A DNA stretch of 64,000 nucleotides, from assembly GCA_035084275.1 (NCBI GenBank), contig CM068756.1:14508001-14572000 (forward strand), in the 5' to 3' direction. Shown here piece after piece: positions 276-20,356 of this stretch (its first letter is position 1; each line of letters begins with the position of its first letter). A model generated the notes under the pieces. The model was not told the origin of the DNA. It worked only from the letters and a program-made list of their open reading frames with translations, and ran no database searches. The position numbers and the translations under genes were made by a program. The DNA comes from Hydrolagus colliei (taxonomy: Eukaryota).

Positions 276-3200
276 GGAAAAATTGGCAGGTAAGACAACT
301 AACGAGCAGTGGGCAGCGTTCAAAGAGGAGATAGTTCAAATACGGGAGGGGTAATAAGGAGGACAGGGGTAAAGGGAAGACGGGAGAAAAATGCAGAGGA
401 AGTAATTTGTGCCTTAGAGTGCATGTATGTAAATGCACGAAGTTTGAGAAATAAAATTGGTGAGCTGCAGGCTCAGGTTGCTGCGAGGCGATATGATGTT
501 ATAGCAGTAACAGAGACTTGGCTCCAGCATGGGCAGGAATGGGAGTTGAACATTCCTGGTTATAATGTATTCAGGAGGGATAGAGAAGGGAGAAAAGGGG
601 GCGGGGTGGCAATTTTAGTTAAGGACTCAGTGACTGCCTTAGAAAGGAACGAGGTGGAAGAAGGACTAAAAACCGAATCTATCTGGTTAGAATTGAGGAA
701 TAAAAAAGGTGCAGTTACACTGTTAGGGGTATACTATAGACCACCAAATAGTGGGGAGGAGATAGACAAGCAGATCTGCAAGCGTATCACGGAGAAATGC
801 AGAGCTAATAGAGTAGTGATAATGGGTGACTTCAACTATCCCAACATAGACTGGCAGAATAGTAGAGTAAAGGGCAAGGAGGGAGAAGAATTCCTGAAGT
901 GTGTGCAGGACAACTTTCTTGATCAGTATGTTTCCAGTCCAACGAGGAAAGAAGCATTGCTGGATCTAGTTTTGGGAAATGAGGTAGGGCAAGTTCAACA
1001 GGTTTCTGTAGGTGAGCATCTAGGGAATAGTGACCACAATATCGTTAGATTCAGAATAATTATGGAAAGGGATAAGGAACGATCACAGGTGAGGACACTC
1101 AACTGGAAAAGGGCTAATTTCAATGAGTTGAGGTGGGACCTAGCCAAGGTGGATTGGAAAGAAAAATTGGCAGGTAAGACAACTAACGAGCAGTGGGCAG
1201 CGTTCAAAGAGGAGATAGTTCAGGCACAGGTCAAAAGCATCCCCACAAAGGTGAAATGTAAGGCATCCAAACCTCCCTGGATGACTAAGGAAATCGGGGC
1301 CAAAATCAAACAAAAAAAAGAGGCTTATGATAAGTGTCAGGCTCAAAATTCAGAAGGGAACCAAGCAGAATATAGGAAGTGTAGGATAGAACTAAAAAAG
1401 GAAGTTAGAGGGGCAAAGAGACTGCATGAAAAACAATTAGCGAGTAAGATTAAGGGGAACCCTAAGGTTTTTTACCAACATATTAAGAGTAAAAGGTTGG
1501 TCAAGGAGAGGGTGGGGCCAATTAGGGACCTAGGAGGAAATCTCATTGTGGAGGCAGAGGGCATGGCTGATGTACTGAATGAGTACTTCGCCTCTGTCTT
1601 CACAAAAGAAAATGATACAGCCAATGCCATGGTATTAGAGGAGAGGGTAGGAGAAATGGATAGAATAATTATAACCAGAGAGGAAGTGCTAAAAAGGTTG
1701 ACGTCGCTCAAGGTGGATAAGTCACCTGGTCCGGATGGGATGCACCCTAGGTTACTAAGTGAGGCACGGGAGCAAATAGCAGGGACTCTGGCCACGATCT
1801 TTCAATCTTCCTTGGACACAGGGGTCGTGCCAGAGGACTGGAGGATAGCTAATGTTACTCCCTTGTATAAAAAGGGGCAGAAGGACAAGCCTGGTAACTA
1901 CAGACCAGTCAGTCTAACGTCGGTAGTGGGCAAACTTCTAGAGTCCATAATCAGGGACAAGGTAGATCTTCACTTAGAAAGATATAGGCTAATAAAGGAC
2001 AGTCAACATGGATTTGTCGAAGGCAAATCTTGCCTTACAAATCTGATAGAATTTTTTGATGAGGTAACGGAATGGGTGGATAATGGTAGCGCAGTTGATG
2101 TAGTTTACATGGACTTTCAAAAGGCATTTGACAAAGTGCCACATGAGAGACTTATTATGAAATTAAAGGCCCATGGCGTAAAAGGGACAGTGGCAGCGTG
2201 GATCCACAACTGGCTGCGAGACAGAAAGCAGAGAGTTGTAGTGAGCGGCTGTTTTTCAGATTGGAGGGAAGTGAGCAGTGGTGTGCCACAGGGATCGGTT
2301 TTGGGACCATTGCTGTTTGTAATCTTCATCAATGATCTGGACTTGGGTGTACGGAGTACAGTTTCCAAGTTTGCAGATGACACTAAGTTAGGGAGAATAG
2401 TAAACAGTGAGGAGGATAGTAGCCATCTGCAAGAGGATATAGACAAATTGGTAAAGTGGGCAGACACATGGCAGATGAAGTTTAATGCAGAGAAGTGTGA
2501 GGTGATGCATTTTGGGAGAAGAAATGAAGGGAGGCAACATAGGCTAGATAGTACAATTTTAAATGGTGTGAAGGAACAGAGAGACCTGGGGATTTGTGTT
2601 AGTGACTCGTTGAAGGTGGCAGGACAGGTAGACAAGGCTGTTAAGAAGGCATATGGGATACTAGGCTTTATAAATAGAGGTATAGAGTACAAAAGTCAGG
2701 AAGTGCTGACTAACCTCTATAGGACTTTGGTGAGGCCTCAGCTGGAATACTGTGTTCAATTCTGGTCACCACACTACAGAAAGGATGTGAAGGCATTGGA
2801 AAGGGTACAACGAAGATTTACTAGGATGGTGCCAGGATTGAGGGACTTCAGCTATGAGGAGAGGCTAGATAGGCTAGGGTTATTCTCTCTGGAGCAGAGA
2901 AGATTGAGGGGAGACCTAATAGAGGTTTATAAGATCATGAGGGGTTTCGACAGGGCAAATAGAGAAAAACTATTTCCACTCGTGGGTGAATCTGTGACTC
3001 GTGGTCACAGATTTAAAATAGTTTCAAGGCGCAGTAGAGGGGAGCTGAGGAGAAATTTTTTCACTCAGCAAGTTGTTCGAATCTGGAATGCATTGCCTGA
3101 AAAGGTGGTGGAGGCTGATTCGATAACAACTTTTAAAAGGGAATTAGATCTTTATTTAGGGAGAACGGGTCTATTAGGCTATGGGGAGCGGGCAGGGCAA

Positions 3201-3305
3201 TGGGGTTGAATCGCTCTTTTCAAAGAGCCGGCACAGACTAGATGGGCCGAATGGCCTCCTTTTGTGCCGTAAAATTCTATGATTCTATGATTCTATGATT
3301 CTATG
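276..3305 (+). mobile_element. CR1-clade LINE, 5'-truncated, with intact ORF2, inserted antisense in the V-C1 intron of gene A1
   Basis: APE endonuclease + RT ORF; 3' tail (ATTCTATG)x4 at 3274-3305; ATTTT flanks both sides (271-275, 3306-3310). The paralogous intron at about 23895-23915 reads ctacattttaataag without the insert. Confidence 0.95.
423..3209 (+). CDS. CR1 ORF2 (AP endonuclease-reverse transcriptase), 928 aa from the first ATG
   Basis: Uninterrupted ORF with YVNARS, AVTETW, GDFN, SDH (APE) and [22 protein letters not shown] (RT). The ORF-track start at 309 lies in a duplicated junction fragment. Confidence 0.93.
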   Translation: MYVNARSLRNKIGELQAQVAARRYDVIAVTETWLQHGQEWELNIPGYNVFRRDREGRKGGGVAILVKDSVTALERNEVEEGLKTESIWLELRNKKGAVTLLGVYYRPPNSGEEIDKQICKRITEKCRANRVVIMGDFNYPNIDWQNSRVKGKEGEEFLKCVQDNFLDQYVSSPTRKEALLDLVLGNEVGQVQQVSVGEHLGNSDHNIVRFRIIMERDKERSQVRTLNWKRANFNELRWDLAKVDWKEKLAGKTTNEQWAAFKEEIVQAQVKSIPTKVKCKASKPPWMTKEIGAKIKQKKEAYDKCQAQNSEGNQAEYRKCRIELKKEVRGAKRLHEKQLASKIKGNPKVFYQHIKSKRLVKERVGPIRDLGGNLIVEAEGMADVLNEYFASVFTKENDTANAMVLEERVGEMDRIIITREEVLKRLTSLKVDKSPGPDGMHPRLLSEAREQIAGTLATIFQSSLDTGVVPEDWRIANVTPLYKKGQKDKPGNYRPVSLTSVVGKLLESIIRDKVDLHLERYRLIKDSQHGFVEGKSCLTNLIEFFDEVTEWVDNGSAVDVVYMDFQKAFDKVPHERLIMKLKAHGVKGTVAAWIHNWLRDRKQRVVVSGCFSDWREVSSGVPQGSVLGPLLFVIFINDLDLGVRSTVSKFADDTKLGRIVNSEEDSSHLQEDIDKLVKWADTWQMKFNAEKCEVMHFGRRNEGRQHRLDSTILNGVKEQRDLGICVSDSLKVAGQVDKAVKKAYGILGFINRGIEYKSQEVLTNLYRTLVRPQLEYCVQFWSPHYRKDVKALERVQRRFTRMVPGLRDFSYEERLDRLGLFSLEQRRLRGDLIEVYKIMRGFDRANREKLFPLVGESVTRGHRFKIVSRRSRGELRRNFFTQQVVRIWNALPEKVVEADSITTFKRELDLYLGRTGLLGYGERAGQWG

Positions 3306-4091
3306 ATTTTAATAAGATTTCAACTGATTTACAAGAGGTACAATGTGTGCTTCGAAACCATTCGATAACTGTGTGGGGAACAATGTTGAGCGTGAAATGT
3401 TCAGGTTTTCTAAATTGTTGCCATCTGCCTTTCATATTAACAATAATAATCCTGGCATTGGATGCAGCATTTTAGACATTATTAATGTACCTCAAATCGC
3501 TGCACATAGTACAGTGTGAAGTGGATTGATTGTGTGTGACTTTGGGTGACATTTAGAGAGAAAAAAATGGAACTGAATAAACGAACATTTGATCGATCAT
3601 GGGTGGCCTCCACACAGCGATGTACCGTAAATAGTCAAGAAACAAGTAACTAAATTTAACTTAGTAATTCACTGCTCAGCCCAGGTCCAGGAAGAATCTC
3701 TCTCCTCCACTTTCATTGTACCAAAGCATCTTTAATATCCATCCAAACAAGCAGAAACAACCTCGGGTTAAATATTTCCCCAAACAGTGGACAATATAAC
3801 GTATATTGGGACAATCTGGGATAATCTGAATCAATCCATAGAATACAATTCAGACACAGCAATGTTCTAGTGATGGTGGCATGGAGGGCTATGAATGTGT
3901 TTGAAAGCAAAATGCTTATCACATTTATAGAGCAAGTCACCTTCCCGTTTGTGGTGTTTGATGATATATTTGCCGGCTCAGATCAGTACAGTAATGAAGA
4001 GCAAACATTAATAATTTATCCAGATCGATTCCAAAACGCAACGAAGTGTCGCCTTTGGAATATTCTACATTACCTTTGTATTCACACTTAC

Positions 4092-4397
4092 CTTGTACAA
4101 TTAAATGTGACCCAGATCCATGTTTGGTGACTTTCCCCTGACCGGCCAGTGTGCAGACATAGACCCCAGAGTCGTGGAAAGTCACGTTCAGCAGCTGGAG
4201 CGATTTGGAATCAAATATTTTCCGGTTAGTAGGTGTTTGATGCAAGTATTCACCCTCTCCTTCTTTCCACCAGTGAAATGCTCTATCTGAATTTTGTTGA
4301 TCGTTGTCAATCCTGCAACTGAATTTAACGTCTTCACCTCGCAACGCTGTCTGTTTGGCAGGATATTGGATCACGTTCATCGATGCCTCAGCAGGAA
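4092..4397 (-). CDS. Gene A1 VJ-type Ig V exon
   Basis: cag| acceptor 4400-4398, |gtaagt donor 4091-4086, 306 nt, phase 1-1. VPAEASMNVIQYP..KFSC..HWWKEG..DSGVYVC..HGSGSHLIVQ. Confidence 0.92.
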
Positions 4398-4589
4398 CTG
4401 TCAGGGAATGAATTAACCTATAATTAGTGATTATTATTGAAAGGAAAAAGCGCAATTAAATAGACGAGAAGAGGGAGAGAAAGGTGGGAGAACGTTAGAG
4501 GGAAAGAAAGACGGACGTATTCACTACATGTTTTAAAACTGCATGTGTACCGTTTTGTATTTTAACTATAATATAGTAAAATGACAGAC

Positions 4590-4642
4590 CTGTGGCTATA
4601 ATCCCCATTAGAGAAAGACGGGATCACATCACTGGCCAACAT
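4590..4642 (-). pseudogene. Gene A1 leader exon, 53 nt, 2-nt deletion relative to A3 (frameshift)
   Basis: Aligns to the 55-nt A3 leader. ATG at 4642, donor gtctgt. Spliced to V it hits TGA after 3 codons. Confidence 0.7.
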
Positions 4643-5604
4643 TGTGAGCAGTTGTTGAGACTCACAGTGAACCAGTCACTGTGACAAACCTTTGCTGATT
4701 TTGTTGATTTTGCAGTGAGGTTTGACTTCCTGTCCCCGAGATTCAGAGACGGCTCAGTTACTATTGGCAAGGACAGATGTGCCTTTCGATACTAAGTCGG
4801 ATCATTCCGTGTATCGGCAGGAGAAAGGGGGGTTTAAACATTGCCGTTGTCTGTGTATCGCATTATTACCTTTCATATACGATTATGAAACGTAACCACC
4901 TGTACGTAAATGGGAAATCAATTGACTGTACATTGTGTGGAGGAAATGGGAATAGAAAAGGTCAGTTTGTTGCCAAATAATTATTGTTATTAAAATGTAA
5001 AACACCAGTTTAGGCGACAGAACCCGAGCCACCAGTGATTGAAATCACTATTGTATTGAATTCCCTTCCAATAGTTTATTTAATGCGATTGAAAACCGTG
5101 AATACAAATCTGATGATTTCAGTAACAATACATTATGTGTCAGGATCCAAACCCATTTATTGAACGTTTAACGGTAGATATGACGTAGCTCAAATATATT
5201 TTCACAAAGTCAAATTAATCTTCGTTGTAACTGCGACAACGATGTGCGCAGCTTCGCTCTAAAAACACAAGTAGCTAACGATCTTGATGGTCCGCGTGAA
5301 CTAGAGACAAACTTAAATGATTTTCGAGTGTGCTTTGGGCAATGTTCTTTGCACACAGCAATACTGTATCTTCCATGGGTTTTTTTTCGTAGAATTTACA
5401 GTAACTGACCAGAAAATGAAATCAAACTCTGATTTAGACCCCGGGTTGTCCTGGATGTAAATTAATTTTGATATTGTTGATAATTGATTACATCATGTGC
5501 CATAGGGCGTAACACGAGGGAACAAATGGGAGCTGTATTGACAGGAATTTGCACCCATTTTACCCCAGTTTACATCACCATTAGAAATCACAAGGTGTAT
5601 TATT

Positions 5605-8116
5605 CAGGGCCGTACGCAGGATTTTTTTTGGGGGGGTGCGAATTGCTAGTGATGGGACCAACAATGGCCAGGGGTTTGCGGGCTGCCCCCGAAGCCCCCT
5701 CGAGGTCTCCGACGTTTTACACAGTTTGAGGTCTTATTTAATCGGTTCAGAAGATCTAATATGAATGGTAAATGTTTCATGCCCTTGGTGTTTAAGAGCA
5801 TCATTATTTATTCAGTATTTATATTTTCCCCGGTAGTCCGTGTCTAATTGGGAAGGTCGAATGTGTTCGCCGATAAAAGCAAACACGATTGTTGACTCGA
5901 TGATGTAAGGAATGCGAACGATAAAGTAAATTACAATCCAATTAACACAGTACAATGACGAATGCTTGGTAAATGTAGGCGTATAGAGAAAATGATCATA
6001 AACTACAGATTGACGGTAATTAATAAGTTGTTCTGCATTGTTATCCTAAGACTAAATTTCTTTCGGACTGTAATGAACAATAATGTAAGAGTAAAGTATG
6101 AATGATGTGCTCAGATATTCCAGCAAAGCAAATTTTATAAAAGACAAGAAAATATACAGAAACTGAAAATCAGTGTCAAACAGTTAATTCACACGTGTTA
6201 CAAGCCTGTTATCAGCATTATCCTGAAAATATCGTTGAACTGTGAGCAATAGTGTAGTTAGTTTTTATTTATTTATTTAGAATCAAAATTAAAGGCATCA
6301 AGCAATACTGATCTGACGAAAAAATACTTGAAAAAATAAGGGAGGGGAAATTAATTCTTTAATAGCGTTCCGTATTCGAGACGCCTCGGTCGCTTTGAAG
6401 CCAATACGTCAACCGCTCTACCAATATCGATTTTCATATTATAATGAATGTGCATTAACGCGAGGGCTGAAAGTCGCTCTTATACGGAGCAGAATGCTGG
6501 ACACTTAGGCAAACCTCGACCAGGAGATTAGGTGACTCGTGAGGTATATATCAGGCTTCTAAGAGACGCCCTGAACGTTTACTGGCGACAGCATCTGACA
6601 AATAGTGAGCTATATGGTACACTACCACACTGGTATCACAGACATTACCGCAGAGGCGTCTTAGGTTTAGCGGACATAGCTGGAGAAGCCGGGAGGAAAC
6701 TGTCCATAGTGCTACTATCCTATGGGAACCATGGCACGGTCACAGAACACGAGGTAGACCGACCCTAACCTACCTCGCTACATGAAATGCACGGATTATA
6801 TTATTATTCAAAGAGAGAAAGAGTGACTTTCAGAGGAGTCACGTTGAAGAGATTTGTGTAGGAAGAGCTGTTGCTTTGCAGACTCGACTGCACCTGTCCT
6901 TTATATCCCGCTGGTGTGAGGCAGCAGTTCTGGGGACCTCAACTCTAACAGGTGCAGGTTAACAATCCTTTAAGTTATAGCCAATTACGTGACACTGCCC
7001 ACAAACCCTGAAAAGAAATCTCAGTTGTCAATCAGTCAGATATGCAACCTCGACCTTGGGAATGTCTTCAGATTCAGAGGCACTGAGTAGGAGGGAAAGA
7101 AAGTTTCCCACAGGTGATAGAAGACAGCAGCATCACCTGGCGAGTCGCCTGGCACAGTGAATTGGTTGAGATGCTGAACCGAGGTCTGATCCGTCTGTTT
7201 AGATGGATGTGAAAAGATCCTCTGACACTACTCGAAAAGCGGAGGGAAGTCTCTCTCCTGTTGTCCTGGCCAACAAACGCCCCCAAATAAAATCGGTGAC
7301 TCACTCCATCGGTGTTTGTGGGACAATCCTGGGCAAAAACTGGCCACTTTACAGTACGTTCTGTGAAGCGCTCTGAGCTGTCTCGACAGTGTACTAAGGC
7401 ACTATTATCAATTGCTAACATTATCAGATTAAAATACGATTTCAGCTTCCACAAAGTGGTGCTACCTTTTTATGTAGTGACTGTATACGGGATGATTTCC
7501 GATTGACACACCACGTGGAATAGGCGCTAAAGCATTAGGCCTACGTCCATGAGTATTTTTTTTAAAGATAGGCATTCCCGTCCAGACACATATAACTTTT
7601 TTGTTGGGTTCTCAAAAGCTTTAATTTCTCAGAAGCTTGTAAATATGTTGTCATTGTTTGCTAGCATTACAGTCACACCTTTCAAAACTTGAGTCATTTT
7701 TACTTACGGTGATCAGATGAAAAGATGATTTTAACTCCAGAATTGGTGCTGCCCCTTGTGGCTGTTTACGGGATGATTTCCAAACGAGGATTTGAGTCTT
7801 GGCGCCTATGTTTATCCAATCACGAGTCACAGACTCGCCGCGTCATGGACTGGTCTATCGACGCGGTATGTTTTGGGGAGACGCCGATTCTGGTGCGCGA
7901 CTCGATAATTTTATATTAATACTAAATCATTCAAAGATGTGTGTTTATAATTTATACATAGTTTTGAAGAACTGATTGTTGCACAAATGTTCAATAAATT
8001 TACTTGGTATTTAAATTTGATAAAAAAATGCAATTCTCTACCCCGGAAAATGTGGACCTTTTATAATTTGGGGGGGTGCGTACGCATCCGTCGCACCCCC
8101 CCTGCGTACGGCCTTG
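5605..8116. mobile_element. 2.5-kb non-autonomous TIR (hAT-like) element or composite
   Basis: CAGGGCCGTACGCAGG at 5605-5620 and CCTGCGTACGGCCTTG at 8101-8116 are inverted with 15/16 match. GGGGGGTGCG subterminal motifs at both ends. No transposase ORF and no matching TSD. Confidence 0.7.
6535..6780 (+). mobile_element. RTE-clade LINE ORF C-terminal fragment, frameshifted
   Basis: RLLRDALNVYWRQHLTNSELYGTLP, then in a shifted frame QRRLRFSGHSWR..LWEPWHGHRTRGRP, typical of the post-RT region of RTE/RTEX elements. Confidence 0.65.
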
Positions 8117-8937
8117 CATCTCCCGGTGACTTGGACAAACTTCCCGAATACAATTACTATTACTTGTGGCAAATATTTTTGCCACAAGTGTTTGATTAAA
8201 AGATTAGCACATCACATTGAATATCCCCTTCGACTTTACTTGTTATTAATCTATGCACTTCTAAATATGTCTTATTTGACTTGATACTGTGGTTTGGATA
8301 TAAGAATCTCTGATCAGCCTGATTAATGGACATATTGTTATGGACCTTGTTATGTGCAAATTTCTTTCAGGTCAGTTAACAGCGTTGTGGCAGACTGAAC
8401 TGTGATCTCAACAGCAAGAATCATTGACCACATTTCCATTGTGTTGCAATCTCAGCCTAAATTGAAAGCTAGTCACGAGAAGTGATATGATCATTTCCTC
8501 TTTTAAATTAAGAAAACAAATTGCAACACTGAATTGCTCAATACAGTTTAAAAAAATACGTTTAAGTAGAAAAACAACCTCTGTGCTTTAAAAGTAATTC
8601 TCATACAAACATATACTTTTGAACAAAAAAAAATATTATTATTATTATAATAATAAACATCATCACCACCATCATGTTAATCAACAACACAATCACCAAC
8701 ACAATAATATGCCATTCGTGGCAAGTTTCCCTCTGTTTGTCCATCTAGTAAAACCCTACGAGTTAGGGCTTTGGGCTGCAGTGTTAACAGCAGCTGCAAT
8801 GGGAAGAATCCCTGTTTCCGAATGGTCTGAGCCATTCTGGCTGGTCTGTATCAGCAATGCTCTGGAGTCCATCAAAGTATTGTACTTTGGTACCGTCAAA
8901 AAATACCCTAGTATTTCCAATAATACGCTTCCCTCAC

Positions 8938-9231
8938 CTTCTGGAATGACTGTGTAAGTGACCGTCTTGGGTGAATTCTTGAGGGCGGAGTGCGATACCT
9001 TACAGGAATATACGGTCCCAATCGGGACAGGCTGTTTCTCTTCCACAGAGCTGGAAAAATTATAGTCTCCCTCTGGTGTCTTTTGTTTCAGTTCTTTTAC
9101 TGCTGTTAGTTTTTTGTCATTTTTAAAGAACTCCATCTTTAAGTTATCAGGATAAAACCCGGTGGTTGTGCACATATATGTTGGAGAAAGCGACGACCCC
9201 GTGGAGGAAATCTTCAGGTCAGTTGGAGGAG
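8938..9231 (-). CDS. Gene B Ig C1 exon
   Basis: aag| acceptor, |gtgagg donor, 294 nt, phase 1-1. APPTDLKI..YMCTTTGFYP..YSCKVSHSAL..TVTYTV. The canonical C1 Trp is replaced by Phe (MEFFKND). The frame stays open past the donor to TAG at 8758-8756. Confidence 0.9.
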
Positions 9232-12200
9232 CTTGAAAGATGTTAACAAACAAGAAAAGAGTTTTCAATTTTTAATATAATATGAAATATTTTGTACCAT
9301 ATTTCACTGGGTATCACAATGCTGATTTGCTTTGCAGTACTGTATTTAATAACTCCATGGATACTAAGTTTGAGTCAGAAAGTTAATAAACGGTATGAAA
9401 CGAAAGTTGCACATAATGTAACTTAATATAATGTTCTATCACACAAAAGCAATCATTTCCAGATTTTTCTCCAAAGTGTAGTGACTGGGTATTTGTGGAC
9501 AAATCCTGCAGTTGGTCTGTGCACAGCAATAGCCCACATGAAGAGTAGCATATTTTTGTTTTCTCTGGGGTATTGTCTGTCAGGATAATGGTAGAAAGTC
9601 CTTTCATCTATGAAAGAATGAACTTGAAGTTTGAAAGCACCTATAGCTTGGAAACATCCCAAAGTATTTCTCGACAACAGAGAGAGCATCTCCCGGTGAC
9701 CTGGACAAACTTCCCGAATACAATTACTCATATGTTTCATGGCTGTTTATGGGACATTGCTGTGTGCAACTGGGCTGCAAAAGTGTCAGTCTGAAAATAT
9801 AGTCAATCCATTTAACAAGGTGCAAGGTGCCAACAAAGTTAATTGTATTCTGTGTAAACTAAACAAATGAATGTTTGTCAAAAGAAATAGCTTGCAGCAG
9901 CTGTAATGTATTACTGAACATTAAAGACAACACTATATATTGTCTAAAACAGAATTTAAGATCCTTAAGGAAATAAAATTAGAAGTTTCAATTTAGCATA
10001 AAGTTATGGTCATTACCTAAGGAAGAAGGGGAATCAAAGGAAGCTCTGCGTCAGGCAATCAGGATATGAATTGCTTCTGTTGTAAAAATTCCCCTAAATT
10101 TCCTTTTTTCTGTGGTGATTTAAAAAATATTTCAAATAAATTTTAATAGCCATCTAAAAATGCTTCACAAAATATATGGTGAAGTCAGCCTGACTGTGTA
10201 TTTTGTGGGCAAAACGCGGCAGCCAATTTCCCACCAACTGTTTCAATTCAGGTTTATTCGTTGCTTGGGTTGAAATTCGGACTTCTTGTACCACCTAGAT
10301 GACAACAATGTCAACATAAGAATATAAAATGTAGGAAGCAGGAATAGACCATTCGCCCCCCGGCCATTTAATAAGATTCTATCCTAATTCCATTTACCCG
10401 CCCTTAACCCCATATCCCTTAATCCCTTCAGCTTTTGAAAAGTTGTCAATTTCAGTCTTGAATATGTTCAATGACTGAGCATCTACACCTTCTGGGGTAG
10501 AGAATGTCATAAATAAAGAGTGCTTTTCGAGGGATTATGAAGATAGTTTCCGCTCCATCTGATAATCCTCCAGATAAATTGTGTGTTTGCTTCAGAGCTA
10601 TATGTGGGATAGATAGTGCTATGTACAAATTGACTAGTCCTGTGAAAGACACAGTCAGTACACTTTATGATAAATCCCGCAAAGTGCTTTGCGATGTCCT
10701 CCTCATATGAAATTAAATGCAATGATTATTATTAATAGTGTAGTTCCCAATATTCTGGATGTGATTCTGTCCTGTTAGAAATCCAGAGCCTTGGGTTAGG
10801 CAAATATCTGTTACAATGTGGCGCTGGATTAAAGTACACTATTTCTGAACACCTTTTCTTTCAGCCGATATTAAAAGATTGTGGATCATTGATGTGCACA
10901 AATTGGCTACAGCATCTACCTGCAAAACACACAGCCATCAGAATTTACAGTTTCGCTCAGAAAACACACAACCAATTCATTTTAACAGTATATCCTGTGA
11001 AGTGCGTTTGAGACATGTCAACAACATGATAAGACACTATATCAACTGCAAGGATTAGTATTATTATTATTATACAACCCTGTGAAATGCTTATGAGACA
11101 TCGTCTGGAGTTGAACAGTGATGTATCAAATGCAAGGATTATTCTTAGTAGTATTGTCCCAAATGTTCAGTTTAGGTTAAAATACCGAACTCCGGAAGTG
11201 GTATCTGATCATGCAGTACATCCACAGGGTAGTTTGAAGTCTGCCATTAACTTAGTTGTAGTGGGCATCGGGGAGATTCTTTAAGTGATATTTGAAATAA
11301 AATTTTAAAAATCGTTTTGCATCAAACATAGCTCAGAATGAGGGGACCATTCTACTAAAGTGAATGTGATTATTTGATGTGAAGGAAATTATTTGTGACC
11401 TGAGTGAAAAGTTAAAACATTTAAATCAATAATAGGGTAAATTACCTGATTTCATTTCAAATAAAACTGAGAGAGTAATAACAACCATGATGTCTCCTCC
11501 CATTGATTCAGAGACAGACGTTTTAAATATAAATTAATTTCAATGCATATCTCCCGGTAAAGCTAACACATAAACCTAAACACAGATTATACTAGGTTAG
11601 CTGTTTGTCTGACGCTTATTGTGGCATTTCTTGATGTATAGATTCGATGGGTTTTGAAATAATCTCTCAAAACTTTCCACCTCCTCATACACATAAATAG
11701 AATCGATTTCGAAACATCGTTGTATATGGGACAGTGCGGTGGGCACTAGAAATATAGCCAATGTTGTGCAATCCGATATAGTAAGCAATCGTTCTCACAC
11801 ACCTGAATGTGTTTGTTTTTATTGTAGGGCTCAGATCAGTCTTTATATACTCGAAAATAGTCTGAAATAGCAGCAGCCTCAGTGACACGTGTTTTTTTTA
11901 GCACAAACAGCTACTAAATGCAATCAAATGTGAGGTGTCTATGGGACTGACTGAGAGATCCGTTTTGCAAATTAAATTCAATTGTTTTCAGTGCAGTTGT
12001 GGAAGCAACGAAAACTCACTGTTGCAAAGTAAATTTATACATATAAACATTATATACACACATATATATCCATATATAATTCATATGTATAGGATATATA
12101 AACCATATATACATACTAATATGTGAGGTATGTTTACATATATAATAGAAAACAGCTAAAGCAGAAGATTTTGAGTGAAATATAACATATAAACATTATA

Positions 12201-12314
12201 TAGAAATTGAACTAATACAATATATATTTCAGAAAACCGAAGAAAACGAAGATATTTACAAATACATTAAACGTGCACAATTTTTTTTCAAGCCACATTG
12301 GTGTTGACACTCAC

Positions 12315-12623
12315 CAGAGACACGGAGCTCGGAGCCTGTCCCATTGCCAGTGTACTCGCCCTCCACTTTGCAGTAATACATTCCTGCATCGCTCACCCTC
12401 AATCTCTGAAGCTGAAACTCCGCGCTTGCCCTGCTTGCAATGGTGAAGGTATTTCGGGAATCTTTCTTTGCGTCTAAGAAATCACGATCTCCGTCTTTCC
12501 ACCAACGAACCTTAATTGCATTTTGATCGGAAATGAGGGGAAAGACGCAGTAAAACTTGACCGTAGAGCCTTTCTCACTTTGCAGAGAGGGGGGAATTTG
12601 CTTAATCTGGGAATTCTCAACAA
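12315..12623 (-). CDS. Gene B VJ-type Ig V exon (absent from the ORF track)
   Basis: cag| acceptor, |gtgagt donor, 309 nt, phase 1-1. Hand translation: VENSQIKQIPPSLQSEKGSTVKFYCVFPLISDQNAIKVRWWKDGDRDFLDAKKDSRNTFTIASRASAEFQLQRLRVSDAGMYYCKVEGEYTGNGTGSELRVS. Confidence 0.92.
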
Positions 12624-13025
12624 CTGTAGAGAATGGACAACATCACATCAGTAAATATCTACATACAGTATATATATATATATAGATATAAAAAACCGTC
12701 AAATATAGACACAGTTAATAATTTAAACCACTGTTCTGCTCCGTTTCCCTATGAAACACTGTCAATGCAGTTTAGTGAATTCTGTGAAGCGCGTTGAGAC
12801 GTCTCAACAAGGCTCTAATATCAAATCAAAACGTTTTTTTATTATTAATATTGTTTCAAAATAACTACGAATAGAACCAATGGTCACGCCAAAATAACAA
12901 ACCATTGTATAATTCATACAGAGACCCTGCTTTACCCTCAAATCAATCGTTTTGGAGAATTATTACTAATTAATACAGTCATTCTCAATAACTAATTATT
13001 GAAGGCTTCATTTGGAAGGACTGAC

Positions 13026-13080
13026 CTGTGTAAATCATCCCCAGGATGAATGCCCATCGAACCGAGCTCCTCACAAACAT
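13026..13080 (-). CDS. Gene B leader exon (MFVRSSVRWAFILGMIYT)
   Basis: ATG at 13080, 55 nt, phase-1 donor gtcagt, in frame with the V exon. Confidence 0.78.
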
Positions 13081-13562
13081 GTTAGACAACAGATTTAAAC
13101 GGATTTCTTCGCCAGGACTGGGCAAAGGGCTACCAAGTTATTTTGTGAATGGATTTTTTGCAGTCTTTGCCCTTAATCTGAAACCTACAACACACACACG
13201 CACACACATAAAACGGATGTCACGCTTATGGCCTGCAGTTTCCAACAAAATCGAGGTTTCCTGGCCAAGAAACTACGACCCCGAAGCTCTGAGATCGAGT
13301 TAAAGGATAACAGCTGTGGGTTGTTTATTGAAATGTTCTGTTGATCGACACTTATGCAAACTTATCGGTTCGCTTCTGTGTCAATTCACCGGCAACTTTT
13401 AACGTCATTAAATATATACATACAGTATAGTTTAACACCTTTATTTTATGTTCAGCACTCTGCATCTTTTCAGCACATTTTATTATGGTCATTCAAATCC
13501 CTATTTTATTCGTTTTTTTCACATTGTTTGGAGACCATGGTTTTATTCGTCCCTTTATAAGT

Positions 13563-13862
13563 GGAGTCCTGTGGCTCAGTGTTTGGAGCACTCGCCTCTC
13601 AAGCGAGAGACCTGGGATTGATTCCAGGCAAGTATGAAACTTTGGGGGCAAGTTTCCTTACTCCACACGTGAGAGGAAAAAAAAGCAATAATACATTGCA
13701 CATTTCAACCCTCAGCTGTTTGTGGAACACTGCTGTGGGAAATTAGTTGTCGTGTTTCGCCCACTAATATATAGTCAATTCCCTTTACAGTATATTCTCT
13801 GAAGCGCTTTCAGGCATCTAGAAGATGTGAAACGCACTTTATCAAATACAAGGATTATTGTT
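13563..13862 (+). mobile_element. tRNA-derived SINE with L2-like tail
   Basis: A-box-like GGCTCAGTG head, central ttgtcgtgtttcgccc domain, tail ctgaagcgcttt..gtgaaacgcac..atcaaatacaag. Confidence 0.75.
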
Positions 13863-14157
13863 AGTGAAATGGAAAAAAAAATCAGGTCACTCACATTCAC
13901 GCTTAAATGCCTCATCTCTAAAACACAGTTCTAGCATTGGCGACTGGGATTAAGTGAATATAGGTTAATTTGGATATAATACATTTAACAAGAAAACAAT
14001 TCCCCCATTGAAGCCTCGAGGTGAATCTTGCCATTGAGGTAAATGAAGTGCTGTAGTTCTAACTATAGCGTTCACTTCGTATTTTGTTGTAGCCAAAGTG
14101 AAATGTCAAAACGATTTCTGGTTGTTTCTCATCACTGAAGCTGATGAAGATGATTGT

Positions 14158-14470
14158 GGAGTCCTGTAGTGTAGCTCAGTGGTTAGAGCACTTGCCTTAC
14201 AAGCGCGAGACCTGTGCTCGAATCCAGGCAGGTCAGGGTGAAACCTTGGGCAAGTTTCCTTACTCCACAGGCCTAATAATAATCCCTCCAAAAAAAAAAT
14301 AACTTGCAGTTGAATCCACGACTGTTTGTGGGGCGCTGCTGTGCGCAATTGACTGCCACGTTTCAACCATAAATATATGGTCAATTCACTTTACAGTATA
14401 TTCTGTGAAGCGCTTTGAGATGTCCACAAGGTGTGAAAAGTGCGATATCAACTGCAAGGATTATTATTAT
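14158..14470 (+). mobile_element. tRNA-derived SINE, full length
   Basis: TAGCTCAGTGG A box, CTCGAATCC B box, tgactgccacgtttc core, L2-like tail ending in attattatt. Confidence 0.8.
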
Positions 14471-15014
14471 TAATGATTGCGAGACAGTGGTTCTTTCGCA
14501 AAATATTAATAATCATTGCTTTTATCACATTTTTGAGACGTTTGAAATGTGTCACAGAATATAATTTCAAGTGTAGTGACTGTATGTTTTCTGGGCGAAA
14601 CGATGCGGCTAATTGAGAACAGCAAATGTTTGTGCATTGAGCGAACAAATCTATATATGTTAAGGGCTCATTACTCCCAGAAATCAATCTATCAATTGAG
14701 CAAGTGGGTTTCTACTTATTGTAAACATAGGTGTGTGTGTGTGTGTGTGTGAAGGATTTGCCCTGCCCATGAATCAAACCCAGTTCCTCTCGTTTGTTAG
14801 GTGAGCGCTCTAACTGCTACACTACGGACTCAATCTATTATTGGCCAAATTCTATCACCACATAGACATCACAAAACGCTTCACAGAATACATTGTAAAG
14901 TATAGTGACCCTGTGTTTTGTGGGTGAAACTCAGCAGCCAACTGTGGATAATTAGATTTCTGAGACAAAAAAATTAAGCTGTAACTCGCAAATGTGGAAT
15001 GTTTGATATAGAAT

Positions 15015-15160
15015 AGGCAGCTGTGACACTGAAGTCCTGTTTATTTTGGTTTGTGAAATGTGGTTGCTGTAGTTGTTGTGATTTGACATCCATTTCTACA
15101 ATTACATTGTGAGAATAATAATGCTTCCTGTTAATAGCAGAGGAAGGTTAAACACACATC
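15015..15160. promoter_or_regulatory. Conserved non-coding element, copy 1 (RUNX TGTGGT 15059, ETS CTTCCTG 15124)
   Basis: Aligns by eye with 26320-26450 and 30075-30215. Confidence 0.5.
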
Positions 15161-16126
15161 TAAATATAAAACGTAGCATTCGGAAAGGTTGTTTTAAGCA
15201 TCAACTACACTTGGAGTCAATAGGGACAGAAATAAGCAATTTCTGCTGACAGTTCTATCCGTGCCAAATTGATAGAAATAAATAATTCCCTCTAAAGCAC
15301 ATCCCACCCCTCCAAATACCTAAATTATCATTCCATCTTCACCTTACCTTTTGTATCCAAAGACCTGACCACTGAACTTTGTTCCCACCTGTTTCTGCAC
15401 TGAGTCCTTGACGTCCAGTTTCTACCGAAACCCGAGACAGCACAGTCAAAGTAATGATCATACACTCTCTCTTTGGTTCTCTCTCACTCTGCAATGTCGG
15501 CCCTTTGGCTTTTTGTATTGCTTTGTATCCAAGGTCCTGGTCACTCAACTTTGTTCCCACGTTTTACTGCACTCGGTGCTAGAACACCTCAAGTTAAGCT
15601 TGTGCGCACAGCATAGAAAGACTAGTAACAGAAAACAAAGTCTCTCTCTCTCTGTTTGTCTGTCTCTTTCTGTCTCCATCCATCTTTGTTGCACTGCATG
15701 GCCACCTGCAGTTTCCAAGAACTGTATTTTAGGCCTCATTCTATTTCTCATTTATCTCTTTGTGATACTTTCCACGTACAAGCTACTAACTTTCGTATTT
15801 ATGTCAATCAAAGACCGCTCTTCTTTTCAACTTCCACTGTTGATTCCAGGTCCACTGAAGCTCTAACTATTTGGGTGTCAAGATGAAGATGACCCCAGAC
15901 TTCCTCTAACTTAATATGGATGATGGAAGCCATTTTCCTCCACTTCTGCAAACATTTCTTTACTCTCATTTCTTGCCGCACCCTATGTGCACCACCATTA
16001 GTGGCCATACCTCCGGTTCTTTGCCCACAAAAATACACAGAAATTTAATTTCACATTATAGGAAGTTCCTATCACTTGAATATTTAGTTGCCTTTAGGAA
16101 GACTGAAAGGATCAGAGCTGTTATTA

Positions 16127-16900
16127 TCCCAGGCAGCCACAGCGCACAAGGTCCTCTGGTCTCTCTGTACATGAATCGTGTCACCATCTTTTGCTCATTC
16201 TAGTGATCAGTCTACTGTTCAGTCGCAAGGCTACTGGGTGTCCTCAAAGAATTGAAATGAGATTTGGGCAGCAAAGCAACTGCCAAAATGGCATGGTGAT
16301 GTATTTTGATCACTGGCATGACTGCATGTGCAACAAAAACTTCCAGTCAGCCTAGACTATATCAAGGTATTTTGATCTGGTTGGGTTCTCTGTGTGTGCC
16401 ATGAACAGTGGGAATAGTGTTAAGCATAGCAAGGACCTGCAAATGTGGTATGAGTGCTTGCTGCCCAACATCGGGAAAAATCTAATGAGCAGGTGTGAAA
16501 TGCTCTCAGTGTTATTGTTGTGATGTGTGCAAATCTGATCTCTTTCACAGACCAGTGTCACTGAGTTCAACATAGTCAACTTCCACTTCATCTTGTGATC
16601 CAAGATGGATGTTGTCCACTGGGCTACAATGCATAAGGGCCCAGTTTAAGAGAGACCTCACTATGACAACCGCACATACCGCTGCAAGCCTGACATAATT
16701 TTTCTACTCAGTGTCAAGAATGATGTGACAGACAAGCCTGCCTCGGGATGTCACATCCATATGGAAGAATCTGTCAGCTGTTAAGCAATTCCTGGATCAC
16801 TACACTGAGTCTACATGTCAGGTCATGATTTTCTCAAGGAGTGAAATGTGGCATAACCTGCTCCCTCCCAACTTTGTGTAGCCTTACAATCCAATTCAAA
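16127..16900. repeat. Intergenic block paralogous to 32803-33530 (3' flank of the A2/A3 duplication unit)
   Basis: Shared strings such as gcacaaggtc..ctctctgta..atgaatc.tgtcacc and cagcctagactatatcaagg. Confidence 0.8.
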
Positions 16901-16919
16901 ATTATGTTTGTACAGCACC

Positions 16920-17740
16920 TTTCACATCAGGAGTACATCTCAAGGTACTGGATGGTCAGGGATATGGAACCAAGAAGTGGAATATTGGGGTACAGTAAAA
17001 TGGAGGGCAGGGAGGATACAAAGGTGACAAAAGAATGGTTGAAGAGGATGGTCTTGAGACACGCCTTGAAGGACTGAAGAAGTGAAGTGAAGGGAATGTG
17101 GGATGGAGTACCAAAGGTTGGGGACAGAAAGGCTGAAGGCCTGACCACTGACATTTGGGTGGTCCATGTAGGGGATGTACAGCAATCTGGTGCCAGCTGA
17201 CTGGACAGGTTGAACAGGAGTTGGCTCATCACATGGGTATGAAGGGGGAAGGCCATAGAGAGCCTTGTAGGTGCAGGCAAAGATCTGCAACTCTATCTCT
17301 GAGGGATTGGGAGCCAGTGTAGAAGAGAGGCGAAGAGTGGAGATCATGAAGTCAGGCATAGGGGAGAGCATGAATTAGAGGGTAGTCCATTATCTGCAGC
17401 TCATGGAGGTGGGAAGGAAGATGAGAGGCAAGTTGGCGTAGTCAAGCCTAGATGTGCTGAAAATGAGAATGAAGGTTTTGGTGGTTTGAGAGTTGAGACA
17501 GTGGCAAAGCCGAATGATGTTGCGGTGATGAGGTAATGCAGATGAGGTCCTGGCATGGATGCTGGTCAGAAAAGTCAGTGGGAGGGCAAGGCGGCAAGGT
17601 TCTGAATTGGATTAGTGAGTTGGAGTGTGGATCTGTCATTGGTAAAGGTGATTTGGACAGTGCCTGAAGTGCAGAGAAGCTGATAGTAGCCAATCAGGAG
17701 GGCCTCAGTGCTGTTGACATTCAACTGTAGAAAGTTTGTT
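16920..17740 (-). mobile_element. L2-like LINE 3' fragment, old, shared with the A3 unit
   Basis: Decayed L2 C-terminal and 3' UTR text (AFSFLSPTFGT, SFKACLKT); homologous to 33540-33630 plus 34890-35150. Confidence 0.7.
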
Positions 17741-18351
17741 CTAAAATACAGCAGAATTATTCGTTTATTAACACTTAGTTGTTTCATGTTAAGTGTTTTT
17801 TTTTGTGGTTCAAAGCATTTGAAAAGTTCAACTCCCACACCACAATGTTTTCACTAACATTGTATGAATAGCGACAGATTTTGTACATTCTCTTTTAAGG
17901 TAGCCCATACCAACTGATTTTTTCACGAATGCTGAAGAGACAGTTGTAGAGGAGACATATTCACGCAATTTTGTTTATTGAAAAGCTGATAGAACATGTT
18001 ACACAAAACAAAATTTCCTAACTTTTATATTCAGTTTTTAGTTTTGTAGCAGTTACAGTACAATTCAATTGTCTTTATGAGGCATACAACTAACTAGTTA
18101 TCTTTAAAAATATTATCAGATTAATATACAGAATATGTTTTTGCAATTACCTATGGCCTATAAAGGTATGGTGAGCAATGTTTTCAAATAATTTTCCTAA
18201 GGACATATCATGTAACAAATTAATCAATGCAGTTGTGTTTAAAACTGATGCAAGGAGCATTGCAGCACAAGACTAATAGTAAATTCAGTAAATTGGAAAG
18301 CTACATCTAGTCTACATCTATACACCAATAGCAGTTTCTGTGCCTGACACA

Positions 18352-18525
18352 TTATTTGGATCTTGGTTCCCTGGAGACAGCTGCTGCTCCTCCTCTGTGG
18401 TTTCTCACATGGATCTCTGCATACTCTGTATTCTCAACAGTACTTTTATGTTTCCCTGTTTTTTTTGAGCAATGTAAATCTAGAACACTGTATGTCAGAT
18501 TGTTCCCAGCTGCTCTTTGATTGTT
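18352..18525 (-). CDS. A2 terminal tail exon (LTYSVL ITIM, TEYAEI ITSM)
   Basis: cag| acceptor, phase 0, NNQRAAGNNLTYSVLDL..ENTEYAEIHVRN..PRSK-TAA. Confidence 0.8.
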   Translation of the reverse strand, partial: NNQRAAGNNLTYSVLDLHCSKKTGKHKSTVENTEYAEIHVRNHRGGAAAVSREPRSK

Positions 18526-18980
18526 CTGAAAAGGTAAAATTTGAGAATTTAATTACATTAAGTTGTCTTCCTTCAGTTTACAAACATGTCCACAAATATT
18601 TGCCAATTATTATTTGCAGCCAAACATGCTCCATTGTTTATTTGATGAAGGCACTGCTCCTCACCGAATTGAGCTTAATAGAATCTAGTGGTGAAAATTC
18701 AGTTTCATATTGGAGTAGTTGTGCGTCAACAGCAATGCTAGGCTGGGAAAGAAAAGCAAAAATCAATCAGGGTAGAAGTCGTTCAAGTGATCTGGATTAG
18801 AAACGTTTCTGTTTTGCTAAACAATGCCGGATTCTCACCATACTTTCATTGCTGGGGTCAGAGACAGGATGAAGAAAGATCAGAGGAGAATGAAACATTA
18901 ACTGCAGAAATGGATTTCATAATAAATAATAAATTGAGATCTACTACATATAATGAAGCAAGTAATATTCTGGGATATAC

Positions 18981-19091
18981 CTGGGAGTACACAGTCCTCT
19001 CGTCTTGTTTTTTAGGTCTTGGTGTTTTTTTGCAATGTTTCAAATCCACTTTGGCATAAGTCACCAACTCATTCCCTGTTCCCTGCTGTGT
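18981..19091 (-). CDS. A2 tail exon 2 (VTYAKV ITIM; TVYSQ|V)
   Basis: 111 nt, phase 0-0, cag| and |gtatat. Confidence 0.8.
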
Positions 19092-19212
19092 CTGTAAAAC
19101 AGAATGTGATAGATTGTCAACATCAATGGTCTAGAGAATCCTTTATATGTATTGATCAAAATGTCCTCAAGAATAAATATTTTTACCTAAGTTTAAAAGT
19201 TGGTGCTACCAT

Positions 19213-19525
19213 TGTGGAGTCCTGTAGATCAGTGGTTAGAACACTCACCTCACAAGCGAGAGACCCACATTTGATTCCCAGTAAGGCAAAATTATCATCA
19301 ACTTTGTTTACTGCGCACACCTGATAATAATCCCTCAAATAGAAGAAATAAATAAATTGGTCACTTCAGTCCATGACTATTTGCATCACAATGCTGTATA
19401 CAATTGGCTGCTGCATTTTGCCCAGAAATATATGGTCAATTCACTTTACAATGTATCCTGTGAAGTGCTTTGAGACGTCCAGAATACTGGAAAAGTTCTA
19501 TATGAAATGCAAGGAATTTTATTAA
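19213..19525 (+). mobile_element. tRNA-derived SINE, shared with the A3 intron (37106-37335)
   Basis: gagtcctgtagatcagtggttagaacactc head, ttggctgctgcatttt core, L2-like tail. Confidence 0.75.
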
Positions 19526-19922
19526 TATTATTTAATATATAGCATTCAAATATTTTACCCGCAAAAATCAACCAGTGTAGTAGTTGTTCATTGATCTACA
19601 GAAATATGGTATGCGCTTTTCTATATATGATTGATGTCCCAGTGCCTTATAGACTGATACAGAGAATACCTGGTCTTTCACAAGAAAAATAACTATTTGA
19701 CTCTACAGTGACAGATTCTTGCCATCATATCACAACCCAGGACAGTGCCAGAGGATTAGTATCAGTTACAGTGCCAGAGTGAAGATTAGAGAACAAAGAA
19801 AGATTAACCACAAAAATGTACAAAATATCTTACAGTAAACACTGAAGTGAGTCCAACAGAAGCAAAATAATTCAATTGGATAGAAAAGGTTTTAGTTTTG
19901 ATTCTGTGTTTCTGAGAAATAC

Positions 19923-20033
19923 GTGGGAGTACACAATGCTCTCCTCTTGCCTTTCAGGTTTTGAAATTTTCGTGGAACTAGTCAAATTTAATGGGGCATA
20001 AGACAATGGTGCATTCTCTGCTGCACGCTTTGC
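19923..20033 (-). CDS. A2 tail exon 1 (LSYAPL ITIM; IVYSH|V)
   Basis: 111 nt, phase 0-0, tag| and |gtattt. Confidence 0.8.
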
Positions 20034-20356
20034 CTATAAAACAAAATCTGATTTACAACAATAAAAATACAATGCATTTCTGAATGCATCTCAGGTTTGG
20101 ATGATGTCCTGATGGACAACATGGAGTCCTGTAGCTCTGTGGTTAGAGCACTCGCCTTACAAGCATGAGAGCTGTGTTCCAGGCAGTTCAGGGCAAAACC
20201 TTGGTCAAGTTTTCTTACTCCACACCCCTAATAATAATCCCTCCCCCCAAAAAACAATAATAGAATTGGTCATCTCAATCCACGACTGTTTATGGGACTG
20301 TGCTCAATTGGCTGCCATGTATCACCCACAAATATACAGTCAATTCACTTTACAAT

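Follow-up and report, generated by a model that had tools for sequence, protein, structure and literature searches.

Gene B, encoded on the reverse strand of the window (the whole 64-kb stretch of DNA analysed here), raises the question of how an immunoglobulin-type gene that looks intact came to lack a membrane anchor. An earlier, sequence-only reading found leader, V and C1 exons with no transmembrane (TM) exon, and proposed (a) a secreted chain pairing with the products of the neighbouring A genes as a light chain does with a heavy chain, (b) a soluble decoy, (c) an activating member using read-through of the C1 donor as an atypical TM segment, or (d) a gene whose 3′ exons were lost at a breakpoint at position 8116. 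The last is the best supported, both by the TM and tail exons of the orthologs and by the structure of the junction. We consider that the gene B in the window is probably a copy of a conserved chondrichthyan gene, whose anchor was lost or displaced by a transposon-associated rearrangement or duplication, and that it is probably not a light-chain-like design. The features are listed in Table 1.

Table 1. Gene B and the features downstream of it, in window coordinates
Feature	Position	Strand	Details
Gene B leader exon	13026..13080	-	55 nt, phase 1; encodes MFVRSSVRWAFILGMIYT(G)
Gene B V exon with fused J-like motif YYCKVEGEYTGNGTGSELRVS	12315..12623	-	309 nt, phase 1
43-nt direct repeat, copy 1	9686..9728	.	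Inside gene B V-C1 intron
Gene B C1-set exon	8938..9231	-	294 nt, phase 1-1; donor AAG/GTGAGG
Read-through extension	8756..8937	-	60 codons plus stop; not hydrophobic enough for TM
Sole B-specific DNA remaining 3′ of C1	8159..8937	-	779 nt; read as the 5′ remnant of the C1-to-TM intron
43-nt direct repeat, copy 2	8116..8158	.	Junction filler between B intron remnant and transposon
TIR DNA transposon, complete	5605..8115	.	hAT-like CAGGG/CAAGG ends
A4 unit	3292..5604	-	5′ flank, leader 4642-4590, V exon 4397-4092; 97.1% identical to A3
LINE	276..3291	+	Intact 966-aa ORF2; inserted in A4 V-C1 intron, not in A3

Gene B does have intact leader, V and C1 exons, as is confirmed by their phases, their splice sites, Pfam and their homologs. 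They are in phase 1 throughout, with AG acceptors and GT donors, and when spliced give a product of 219 residues. V and J lie within a single exon, and the gene is therefore of the non-rearranging type. The product contains a C1-set domain (E 2.6e-11) together with V/I-set matches in Pfam, its best homolog is matched with E 2.5e-94, well past chance, and the Ig fold of the V exon is predicted with pLDDT >90. The leader is close to that of Callorhinchus milii, MFARSSV(Q/H)WAFTLGMIYT.

The earlier observation that the C1 domain has Phe in place of the canonical Trp also holds: the strand-C sequence is MEFFKND, compared to xxWxKNG in relatives. The same Phe is present in C. milii, and β-2-microglobulin likewise has no Trp at this position, so that on sequence comparison the change is harmless and not a defect. 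Of 66 residues that are invariant across six orthologs, 62 are kept in gene B and the other four are conservative changes. By this measure the coding exons have not decayed, which fits either a recent event or a copy that is still used.

Gene B is the 1:1 ortholog of C. milii LOC103185897 (70% identity over all 219 residues), and is 41–46% identical to the orthologs of sharks and rays. In the IQ-TREE phylogeny it is sister to the protein of C. milii, the other holocephalan, with support of 100/100, within a 10-member clade (98/95) whose branching is that of the species tree. The orthogroup is old, and spans chimaeras, sharks and rays. The V/J signature YYC(R/K)V(E/Q)GExTGNGTG and the C1-set domain are present in gene B as in its orthologs, and there is a single C1 domain in gene B, in the A genes and in all relatives examined. 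Through the change N213T, gene B has lost a conserved N-Y-T sequon that its orthologs have where C1 ends. NCBI has assigned the orthologs at least six inconsistent automatic names (SIRP/SHPS-1-like, NCR3LG1-like, Ig lambda-1 light chain-like, tapasin(-related)-like, butyrophilin-like 10 and CD276 homolog), and the proteins are uncharacterised. Literature searches returned no published description of the B-type orthogroup, only work on UrIg and UrIg2 and general papers on MHC and antigen receptors.

The 12 orthologs found in other cartilaginous fishes are 318–327 residues long, and all carry the sequences PWWIYxC...CCKxCK and CVRCS...KKHRK. The full-length genes consist of five exons, namely leader, V, C1, a TM exon encoding the first of these sequences and a tail exon encoding the second. 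This order was mapped in Hemiscyllium, Hemitrygon and Heterodontus, where the C1-to-TM introns are 4.5, 11.3 and 3.1 kb respectively. The TM exon includes a Cys-rich juxtamembrane stretch, no charged residue occurs in the ancestral B-type TM, and the tail is basic and has no tyrosine. These two exons are the orthogroup traits that are missing from the copy in the window.

The missing TM exon was upheld by three approaches. The TM and tail peptides of C. milii gave no match to the window in a tblastn search. A scan of every AG acceptor from 8937 to 1 found nothing credible as a TM exon that could be reached in phase 1. The entire window was translated in all six frames and searched with a TM and tail profile built from the 12 orthologs, with a best E of 0.9; as a positive control, a profile made from elasmobranchs alone recovered the spiked C. 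milii TM (E 6.5e-8) and tail (E 2.3e-9) exons. A hydrophobic low-complexity open reading frame at about 8726 (HIIVLVIVLLINMMVVMMFIII...) was rejected, being AT-rich simple sequence that is unreachable in phase 1 from any AG, and TM candidates found within the transposon or on the strand opposite the LINE were discarded as chance.

Read-through of the C1 donor gives the 60-residue extension exactly as first quoted, ending with a stop codon at 8758–8756. No homolog of it was found and it is not conserved. Judged by eye alone, its C-terminus also seems not hydrophobic enough to serve as a GPI signal. The suggestion that gene B is an activating member that uses this Glu- and Lys-containing segment as an atypical TM draws on the short hydrophobic run SVLLEILGYFLTV, but this is only 13 residues, broken by Glu and not conserved. 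The best 19-residue Kyte–Doolittle window is 1.04, compared to 2.3–3.5 in the real TM exons of the family, which rules out the read-through as a TM, and the ancestral B-type TM offers no precedent for a charged residue. The chance that this reading is right is negligible.

Beyond C1, B-specific sequence ends at a complex junction, where the order is B intron remnant, 43-nt copy, TIR transposon and then the start of the A4 unit. The B-specific part has no similarity to anything elsewhere in the window. The two copies of the 43-nt repeat are identical at 42 of 43 positions, with 0 matches expected by chance. The TIR element that had been placed near 8116 is confirmed at 5605–8115/8116: within the window its core, GGCCGTACGCAGG, occurs only at the two ends of the element. 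A fragment of a LINE reverse transcriptase is found inside it (6532–6768). There is no target-site duplication, since the flanks GTATTATT and CATCTCCC do not match.

On the far side of the transposon, the A4 unit has its counterpart in A3 at 23892–26218. Overall the two are 97–98% identical, that is, 2–3% diverged, and the homology begins exactly at the transposon end (5604 = 26218). The A3 copy lacks the LINE, which was therefore inserted after the A3/A4 duplication. A4 is incomplete here, as the window start falls inside it. Simple insertion of a transposon was rejected as the source of the junction, given the missing target-site duplication and the failure of the homology to A3 to carry on past the element; non-allelic homologous recombination between two transposon copies is not supported, because there is no copy at 26218. 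Several rearrangement models would accommodate both the 43-nt filler and a transposon that lacks a target-site duplication.

The junction could also be an artefact of the assembly, with A4 a retained alternative haplotype of A3, or with a mis-join mediated by two copies of the TIR element, such that the true 3′ exons of B follow 8159. Flanks from unrelated sites without a target-site duplication are the product expected from joining across a collapsed repeat, and the identity between A4 and A3 is high. However, the window contains no runs of N, a divergence of 2–3% together with the insertion of a LINE of 3 kb would be high between alleles, a simple mis-join leaves the 43-nt filler unexplained, and long reads easily cross a repeat of 2.5 kb. 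An artefact is therefore considered quite improbable.

We prefer to read the junction as a genuine structural truncation or displacement in gene B, because all full-length orthologs keep the TM and tail exons, and because B DNA ends at a rearrangement junction. The conserved gene encodes a non-rearranging VJ-C1 surface protein in five exons, including TM and tail, of which the window has only the first three. The B DNA breaks off 779 nt into an expected C1-to-TM intron of >1 kb, and the remnant is joined, via 43 nt copied from its own upstream intron and the complete TIR transposon, to a recent duplicate of A3, namely A4. The rearrangement would have removed the TM and tail exons or displaced them. 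Had it duplicated the segment 26218..8159 in tandem, a complete copy, B′, would be expected downstream of A4, just past the window start; a complete B′ may thus lie just outside the window. The window copy, if transcribed, would give either a secreted V-C1 protein with a 60-residue non-conserved tail, or a transcript that is spliced onwards.

The first of these outcomes is close to the suggestion that gene B is a functional gene for a secreted-only V-C1 protein, which, by design or after losing its anchor, would be made by read-through of the C1 donor and would either compete, in soluble form, with the membrane forms for their ligand or pair with A chains. The intact leader, V and C1 and the retention of almost all the invariant residues are what would be expected of a functional secreted gene, but the event is recent, and intact exons therefore prove little. 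TM-less isoforms are predicted by NCBI for five orthologs, and because of this a soluble form of the B lineage is plausible from sequence. However, these isoforms skip the TM exon and keep the conserved basic tail, so the plausible route is exon skipping and not read-through, and gene B has neither exon. Evolution of a new terminal exon is disfavoured because the C1 donor remains a consensus splice donor and because neither AATAAA nor ATTAAA occurs from the donor at 8937 to the transposon at 8116, which includes everything between the read-through stop and the transposon. The lack of conservation of the extension also counts against a secreted gene.

Pairing with an A chain likewise has no positive support. 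Ig light chains are the top Foldseek matches to gene B in the PDB, yet these are generic Fab matches with TM-scores of only ~0.4, and are uninformative on function. The aromatic residue (F or W) of the FGXG J motif, which in Ig and TCR packs in the V-V interface, is replaced in every one of the 17 family sequences by the Asn of an invariant N-G-T sequon (Asn112). The only cysteines of gene B are four intradomain ones (C44, C103, C142 and C198), and it has no Cys, whether membrane-proximal, C-terminal or in a stalk, that could form an interchain disulfide. In addition, the leader exons of the proposed partners A3 and A4 share a 2-nt deletion (the A4 leader is 53 nt) that breaks the frame. The secreted partner and the decoy of the sequence-only reading were thus left without positive support, and a functional secreted-only gene is unlikely.

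Onward splicing could take a particular form. If the C1 donor of B were spliced to the V acceptor of A4 at 4397, the result would be a V-C1-V-C1-TM-ITIM receptor that bypasses the broken A4 leader. All exons are in phase 1 and the join between B C1 and A4 V is in frame and open, the implied intron of 4.5 kb is near the local intron sizes, and canonical poly(A) signals are absent from 8937 to 8116. This support is purely structural, however; canonical poly(A) hexamers are present on the sense strand for gene B within the transposon (7625 and 6277), and no four-domain relatives with this arrangement were seen among the family proteins examined. Such a fusion gene is very improbable.

A broader proposal would treat the B-type lineage as an ancient non-rearranging VJ-C1 gene that makes membrane and secreted forms, as immunoglobulins do, by using the TM exon in one form and not in the other, as predicted for five species, with the window copy being either a natural secreted-only derivative, retained as a soluble decoy or opsonin-like factor, or the 5′ half of a fusion between B and A4. 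We regard this as distinctly unlikely.

It is concluded that the simplest view of the missing anchor of gene B is as a by-product of duplication associated with a transposon, in a cluster of immune receptors that changes fast and where such events are ordinary. Of greater use are the relatives of the gene. They form a 1:1 orthogroup kept across three groups of cartilaginous fishes, made distinctive by the Cys-rich juxtamembrane stretch, the tyrosine-free basic tail and a TM-skipping isoform that is recurrently predicted. Gene B sits in a cluster with fast-evolving paralogs that bear ITIMs (the A genes carry ITIM-type exons, with xTYxxL and xVYxxV), and could on that account be a conserved member with a non-signalling or ligand-like role.

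Among known systems, the SIRP family (SIRP-α, β, γ and the soluble SIRP-δ) resembles gene B in that a V domain bearing the J-like motif G-x-G-T-x-L-x-V stands at the N-terminus and C1-set sequence comes after it, and both belong to gene clusters that combine ITIM-bearing members with a non-signalling member. The SIRP family includes short-tailed members and a soluble member. It differs in having two C1 domains compared to one in B, and the B-type tail CVRCS...KKHRK is unrelated to SIRP tails; the link between the orthogroup and SIRP comes from automatic NCBI names alone. NKp30 (NCR3) is also of the non-rearranging VJ type and shares the G-N-G-T motif of the G strand with its N-glycan sequon, and a V-only isoform from Pristis has been automatically named NCR3-like. 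NKp30 differs in having no C1 domain, and in the charged Arg in its TM. B7-H6 (NCR3LG1) resembles B in its V-C1 ectodomain, and PDB 6yjp_C is a sequence match, but its V domain is of the B7 type.

The Ig light chain is, like gene B, a two-domain V-C1 chain without an anchor, although in gene B this state is secondary. Gene B differs from it in having V and J fused in one exon with no rearrangement, in the replacement of the FGXG interface aromatic by the N-G-T sequon, and in having no C-terminal Cys.

The orthogroup would be of interest in relation to non-rearranging VJ-C1 genes and the origins of antigen receptors. UrIg and UrIg2 are non-rearranging shark VJ-C1 'antibodies', both of which form disulfide-linked homodimers; UrIg is secreted only and has three C1 domains, while UrIg2 has nine (PMC12227049). 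PRARP genes, which are cited in PMC10751288, are non-rearranging VJ-C1 IgSF genes that have been described from chicken. The searches did not recover UrIg, UrIg2 or PRARP as close relatives of gene B, and the three or nine C1 domains of UrIg and UrIg2 contrast with the single one in B. What all these genes have in common with gene B is a non-rearranging VJ exon followed by C1-type domains.

Gene B is a leader-V-C1 immunoglobulin-type gene on the minus strand. The sequence-only reading described it as having no transmembrane (TM) exon, and this is correct: it has three clean exons, with TM and tail exons absent from the window, which contains no runs of N. Splice sites are canonical throughout, with a consensus C1 donor, AAG/GTGAGG. 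The joined product is 219 aa, with Pfam matches to C1-set (E 2.6e-11) and to V/I-set models. AlphaFold, run on a 17-sequence alignment, gave two confident Ig domains with a mean pLDDT of 85. The top Foldseek matches are Fab light chains at TM-scores of ~0.4, which reflects only the common V-C1 domain order. Searches using tblastn with B and a Heterodontus relative revealed a minus-strand array of V-C1 genes in the window, comprising B and its neighbors A1-A4.

Features of gene B, the surrounding cluster and the junction (window positions)
Feature	Position	Strand	Remarks
B leader exon	13080-13026	minus	55 nt, phase 1
B V exon	12623-12315	minus	309 nt, phase 1; includes J-like motif YYCKVEGEYTGNGTGSELRVS
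B C1 exon	9231-8938	minus	294 nt, phase 1; tblastn, no other exons
A1	V 62988; C1 61130; TM ~60.4 kb; Tyr-motif exons ~58.6, ~56.8 kb	minus	tblastn
A2	V 44648; C1 42991; TM 41402; Tyr-motif exons 37.8, 36.9, 36.4 kb	minus	tblastn
A3	V 24979; C1 23614; TM 22831; Tyr-motif exons 20.0, 19.1, 18.5 kb	minus	tblastn
A4	V 4397-4092; C1 beyond window	minus	tblastn; no other exons within window
A2 leader exon	44898-44844	minus	length comparison
A3 leader exon	~25246-25194	minus	length comparison
A4 leader exon	4642-4590	minus	length comparison
LINE	276-3291; ORF 309-3209	plus	intact 966-aa endonuclease/RT ORF2, in A4 V-C1 intron
TIR element	5605-8115/8116		complete, 2.5 kb; ends CAGGGCCGTACGCAGG... and CAAGGCCGTACGCAGG...
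~300-nt repeat	13557-14472, 19210-19531, 20112-20357, 38196-38529, 61939-62231 and others	both

The closest database relative of B is Callorhinchus milii LOC103185897, with 70% identity across all 219 residues (E 2.5e-94). A HMMER scan of 1.84 billion representatives and a profile search recovered one B ortholog per species, in Hemiscyllium, Chiloscyllium (two species), Stegostoma, Heterodontus, Carcharodon, Heptranchias, Mustelus, Hemitrygon, Hypanus, Mobula and Narcine (partial); a V-only isoform from Pristis was also recovered. In a maximum-likelihood tree, B and the C. milii protein are a sister pair (support 100/100), nested in a 10-member clade (98/95) that branches as the species tree does: holocephalans, then batoids, then sharks. 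The A genes occupy a separate part of the tree and are expanded in a lineage-specific manner; A1 is sister to C. milii XP_007902825 (71% identity). The tree placement indicates that the window is from a holocephalan other than C. milii and that B stands in 1:1 orthology to an old gene. The orthologs carry inconsistent NCBI names (SIRP/SHPS-1-like, NCR3LG1-like, Ig lambda-1-like, tapasin(-related)-like, butyrophilin-like 10, CD276 homolog), and literature searches found no published description of this orthogroup.

Full-length orthologs are 318-327 aa long, and all carry a TM segment and then a tail after C1. The TM segment, PWWIY(I/L/V)C...LLL...CCKxCK, has no charged residue, and the basic tail of ~65 residues has no tyrosine but contains the motifs C(V/S)RCS and KKH(R/H)K. 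The exon order is leader, V, C1, TM, tail in all three species mapped, where the V-to-C1, C1-to-TM and TM-to-tail introns are 9.0, 4.5 and 7.1 kb (Hemiscyllium), 3.7, 11.3 and 4.3 kb (Hemitrygon), and 8.2, 3.1 and 5.3 kb (Heterodontus).

None of the missing exons was found in the window. There was no tblastn match to the C. milii TM and tail peptides, and a TM and tail profile from 12 orthologs reached a best E of 0.9 when all 64 kb were searched in six-frame translation. As a positive control, a profile lacking any holocephalan detected spiked C. milii TM (E 6.5e-8) and tail (E 2.3e-9) exons. Every phase-1 AG acceptor between 8937 and 1 was scanned, and only chance hydrophobic stretches emerged, either inside the TIR element or antisense to the LINE. 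AT-rich simple sequence at 8600-8730 (minus) encodes a hydrophobic pseudo-ORF, HIIVLVIVLLINMMVVMMFIIIIIII..., which mimics a TM segment and is unreachable in phase from the C1 exon. Translation past the C1 donor reproduces the 60-residue extension quoted earlier. The suggestion that it serves as an atypical TM is rejected: its best 19-residue hydropathy is 1.04, compared to 2.3-3.5 in real TM exons of the family.

Self-comparison of the window matched 1-275 with 23635-23909 (98.2% identity) and 3292-5604 with 23892-26218 (97.1%), which marks A4 as a recent duplicate of the A3 unit. The LINE is missing from the A3 copy and is thus young; 62 nt at its 5' edge (277-338) are identical to an internal stretch, 1161-1222. 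The A3/A4 homology starts exactly at 5604, and the adjoining TIR element ends in hAT-like CAGGG and has G/C-run palindromes in subterminal position. The element is single-copy within the 64 kb, its TIR core occurring nowhere in the window except at its two ends, and it contains a fragment resembling a LINE reverse transcriptase C-terminus (6532-6768, plus). The element lacks a target-site duplication, as the 8 bp on its two sides differ (GTATTATT and CATCTCCC). Immediately adjoining it, 8116-8158 matches 9686-9728 of the B V-C1 intron at 42 of 43 positions. The two stretches form a 43-nt direct repeat, set 1570 nt apart with the C1 exon between them; one possibility is that the repeat is templated filler at the junction. 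The copy at 8116-8158 limits the B-specific DNA past C1 to 8937-8159 (779 nt), shorter than every ortholog C1-to-TM intron seen. The arrangement points to a complex rearrangement with its junction within the C1-to-TM intron of B.

Insertion of a transposon alone is ruled out, since past the TIR element the A3 homology does not carry on, and recombination between two copies of the element is unsupported, there being no copy at 26218. This leaves as models a tandem duplication of 26218..8159 associated with the transposon, a deletion adjacent to the transposon, template switching in replication or repair and, though improbable, an assembly mis-join or retained haplotig. Since B lies between A3 and A4, a tandem duplication yielding A4 must also have copied the 5' part of B, and would place a complete second copy, B', downstream of A4, just past the window edge. 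Deletion of the 3' exons at 8116 had been suggested. Their loss is supported, but a simple deletion is not the only outcome, as they are perhaps displaced or in a second copy. On balance we favor B being a copy, truncated or with its 3' part displaced, of a conserved but uncharacterized VJ-C1 gene of cartilaginous fishes; the cause would be a recent rearrangement or duplication, associated with a transposon, within a cluster of immune receptors.

The neighboring A genes look like inhibitory receptors, by analogy of their tail exons: several small exons (18406-20030, 36313-37863 and 56652-58615, minus strand) carry ITIM-like motifs (NLTYSALDL, TVYAQV, DYAEIHV) and resemble the SIRP-alpha tail. 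At 53 nt, the leader exons of A3 and A4 are 2 nt shorter than those of A2 and B (55 nt). This common 2-nt deletion puts the A3/A4 ATG out of frame with the phase-1 V exon, and they are probably pseudogenes, or use an alternative start. The ~300-nt repeat, at 70-85% identity, is scattered across the cluster, in introns and between genes alike, and is probably a SINE.

The proposals that B is a secreted partner chain for the A proteins or a soluble decoy found no positive evidence. The C1 donor is consensus, the extension is unconserved, and there is no free Cys. Reading on from the donor, no AATAAA or ATTAAA occurs before the transposon, which holds the earliest ones (7625 and 6277). The position of the Ig/TCR FGXG interface Phe/Trp is Asn112 of an N-G-T sequon in B, invariant in 17 family members; NKp30 has the same arrangement. 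The suggested partners, A3 and A4, have out-of-frame leaders. Splicing of the B C1 donor to the A4 V acceptor (4397) would produce a read-through fusion, in frame since all exons are phase 1, but nothing supports it and we consider it very unlikely.

B retains 62 of 66 residues invariant in six orthologs, with four conservative changes (I/V, M/V, K/R, N/T), while the C. milii protein departs at 9 of 71 such positions. This comparison shows no sign of decay in the B coding exons; with just 2-3% divergence since duplication, a gene still in use and one recently disabled would look the same. Truncation of B within the window is a fairly ordinary finding. The orthogroup is the more interesting lead, having a conserved anchor, an unusual tail and a second NCBI-predicted isoform of 284-289 aa, which skips the TM exon alone and keeps the tail in five species (C. 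milii, Chiloscyllium plagiosum, Hemiscyllium ocellatum, Heterodontus francisci and Heptranchias perlo). If real, this would be a conserved route to a soluble form with a basic tail. The Phe noted in place of the canonical Trp in the C1 domain is indeed present, in strand C (motif MEFFKND), and is confined to the two holocephalans; elasmobranch orthologs retain Trp. Trp is likewise lacking at this position in beta-2-microglobulin, whose C1 type matches best in the PDB.
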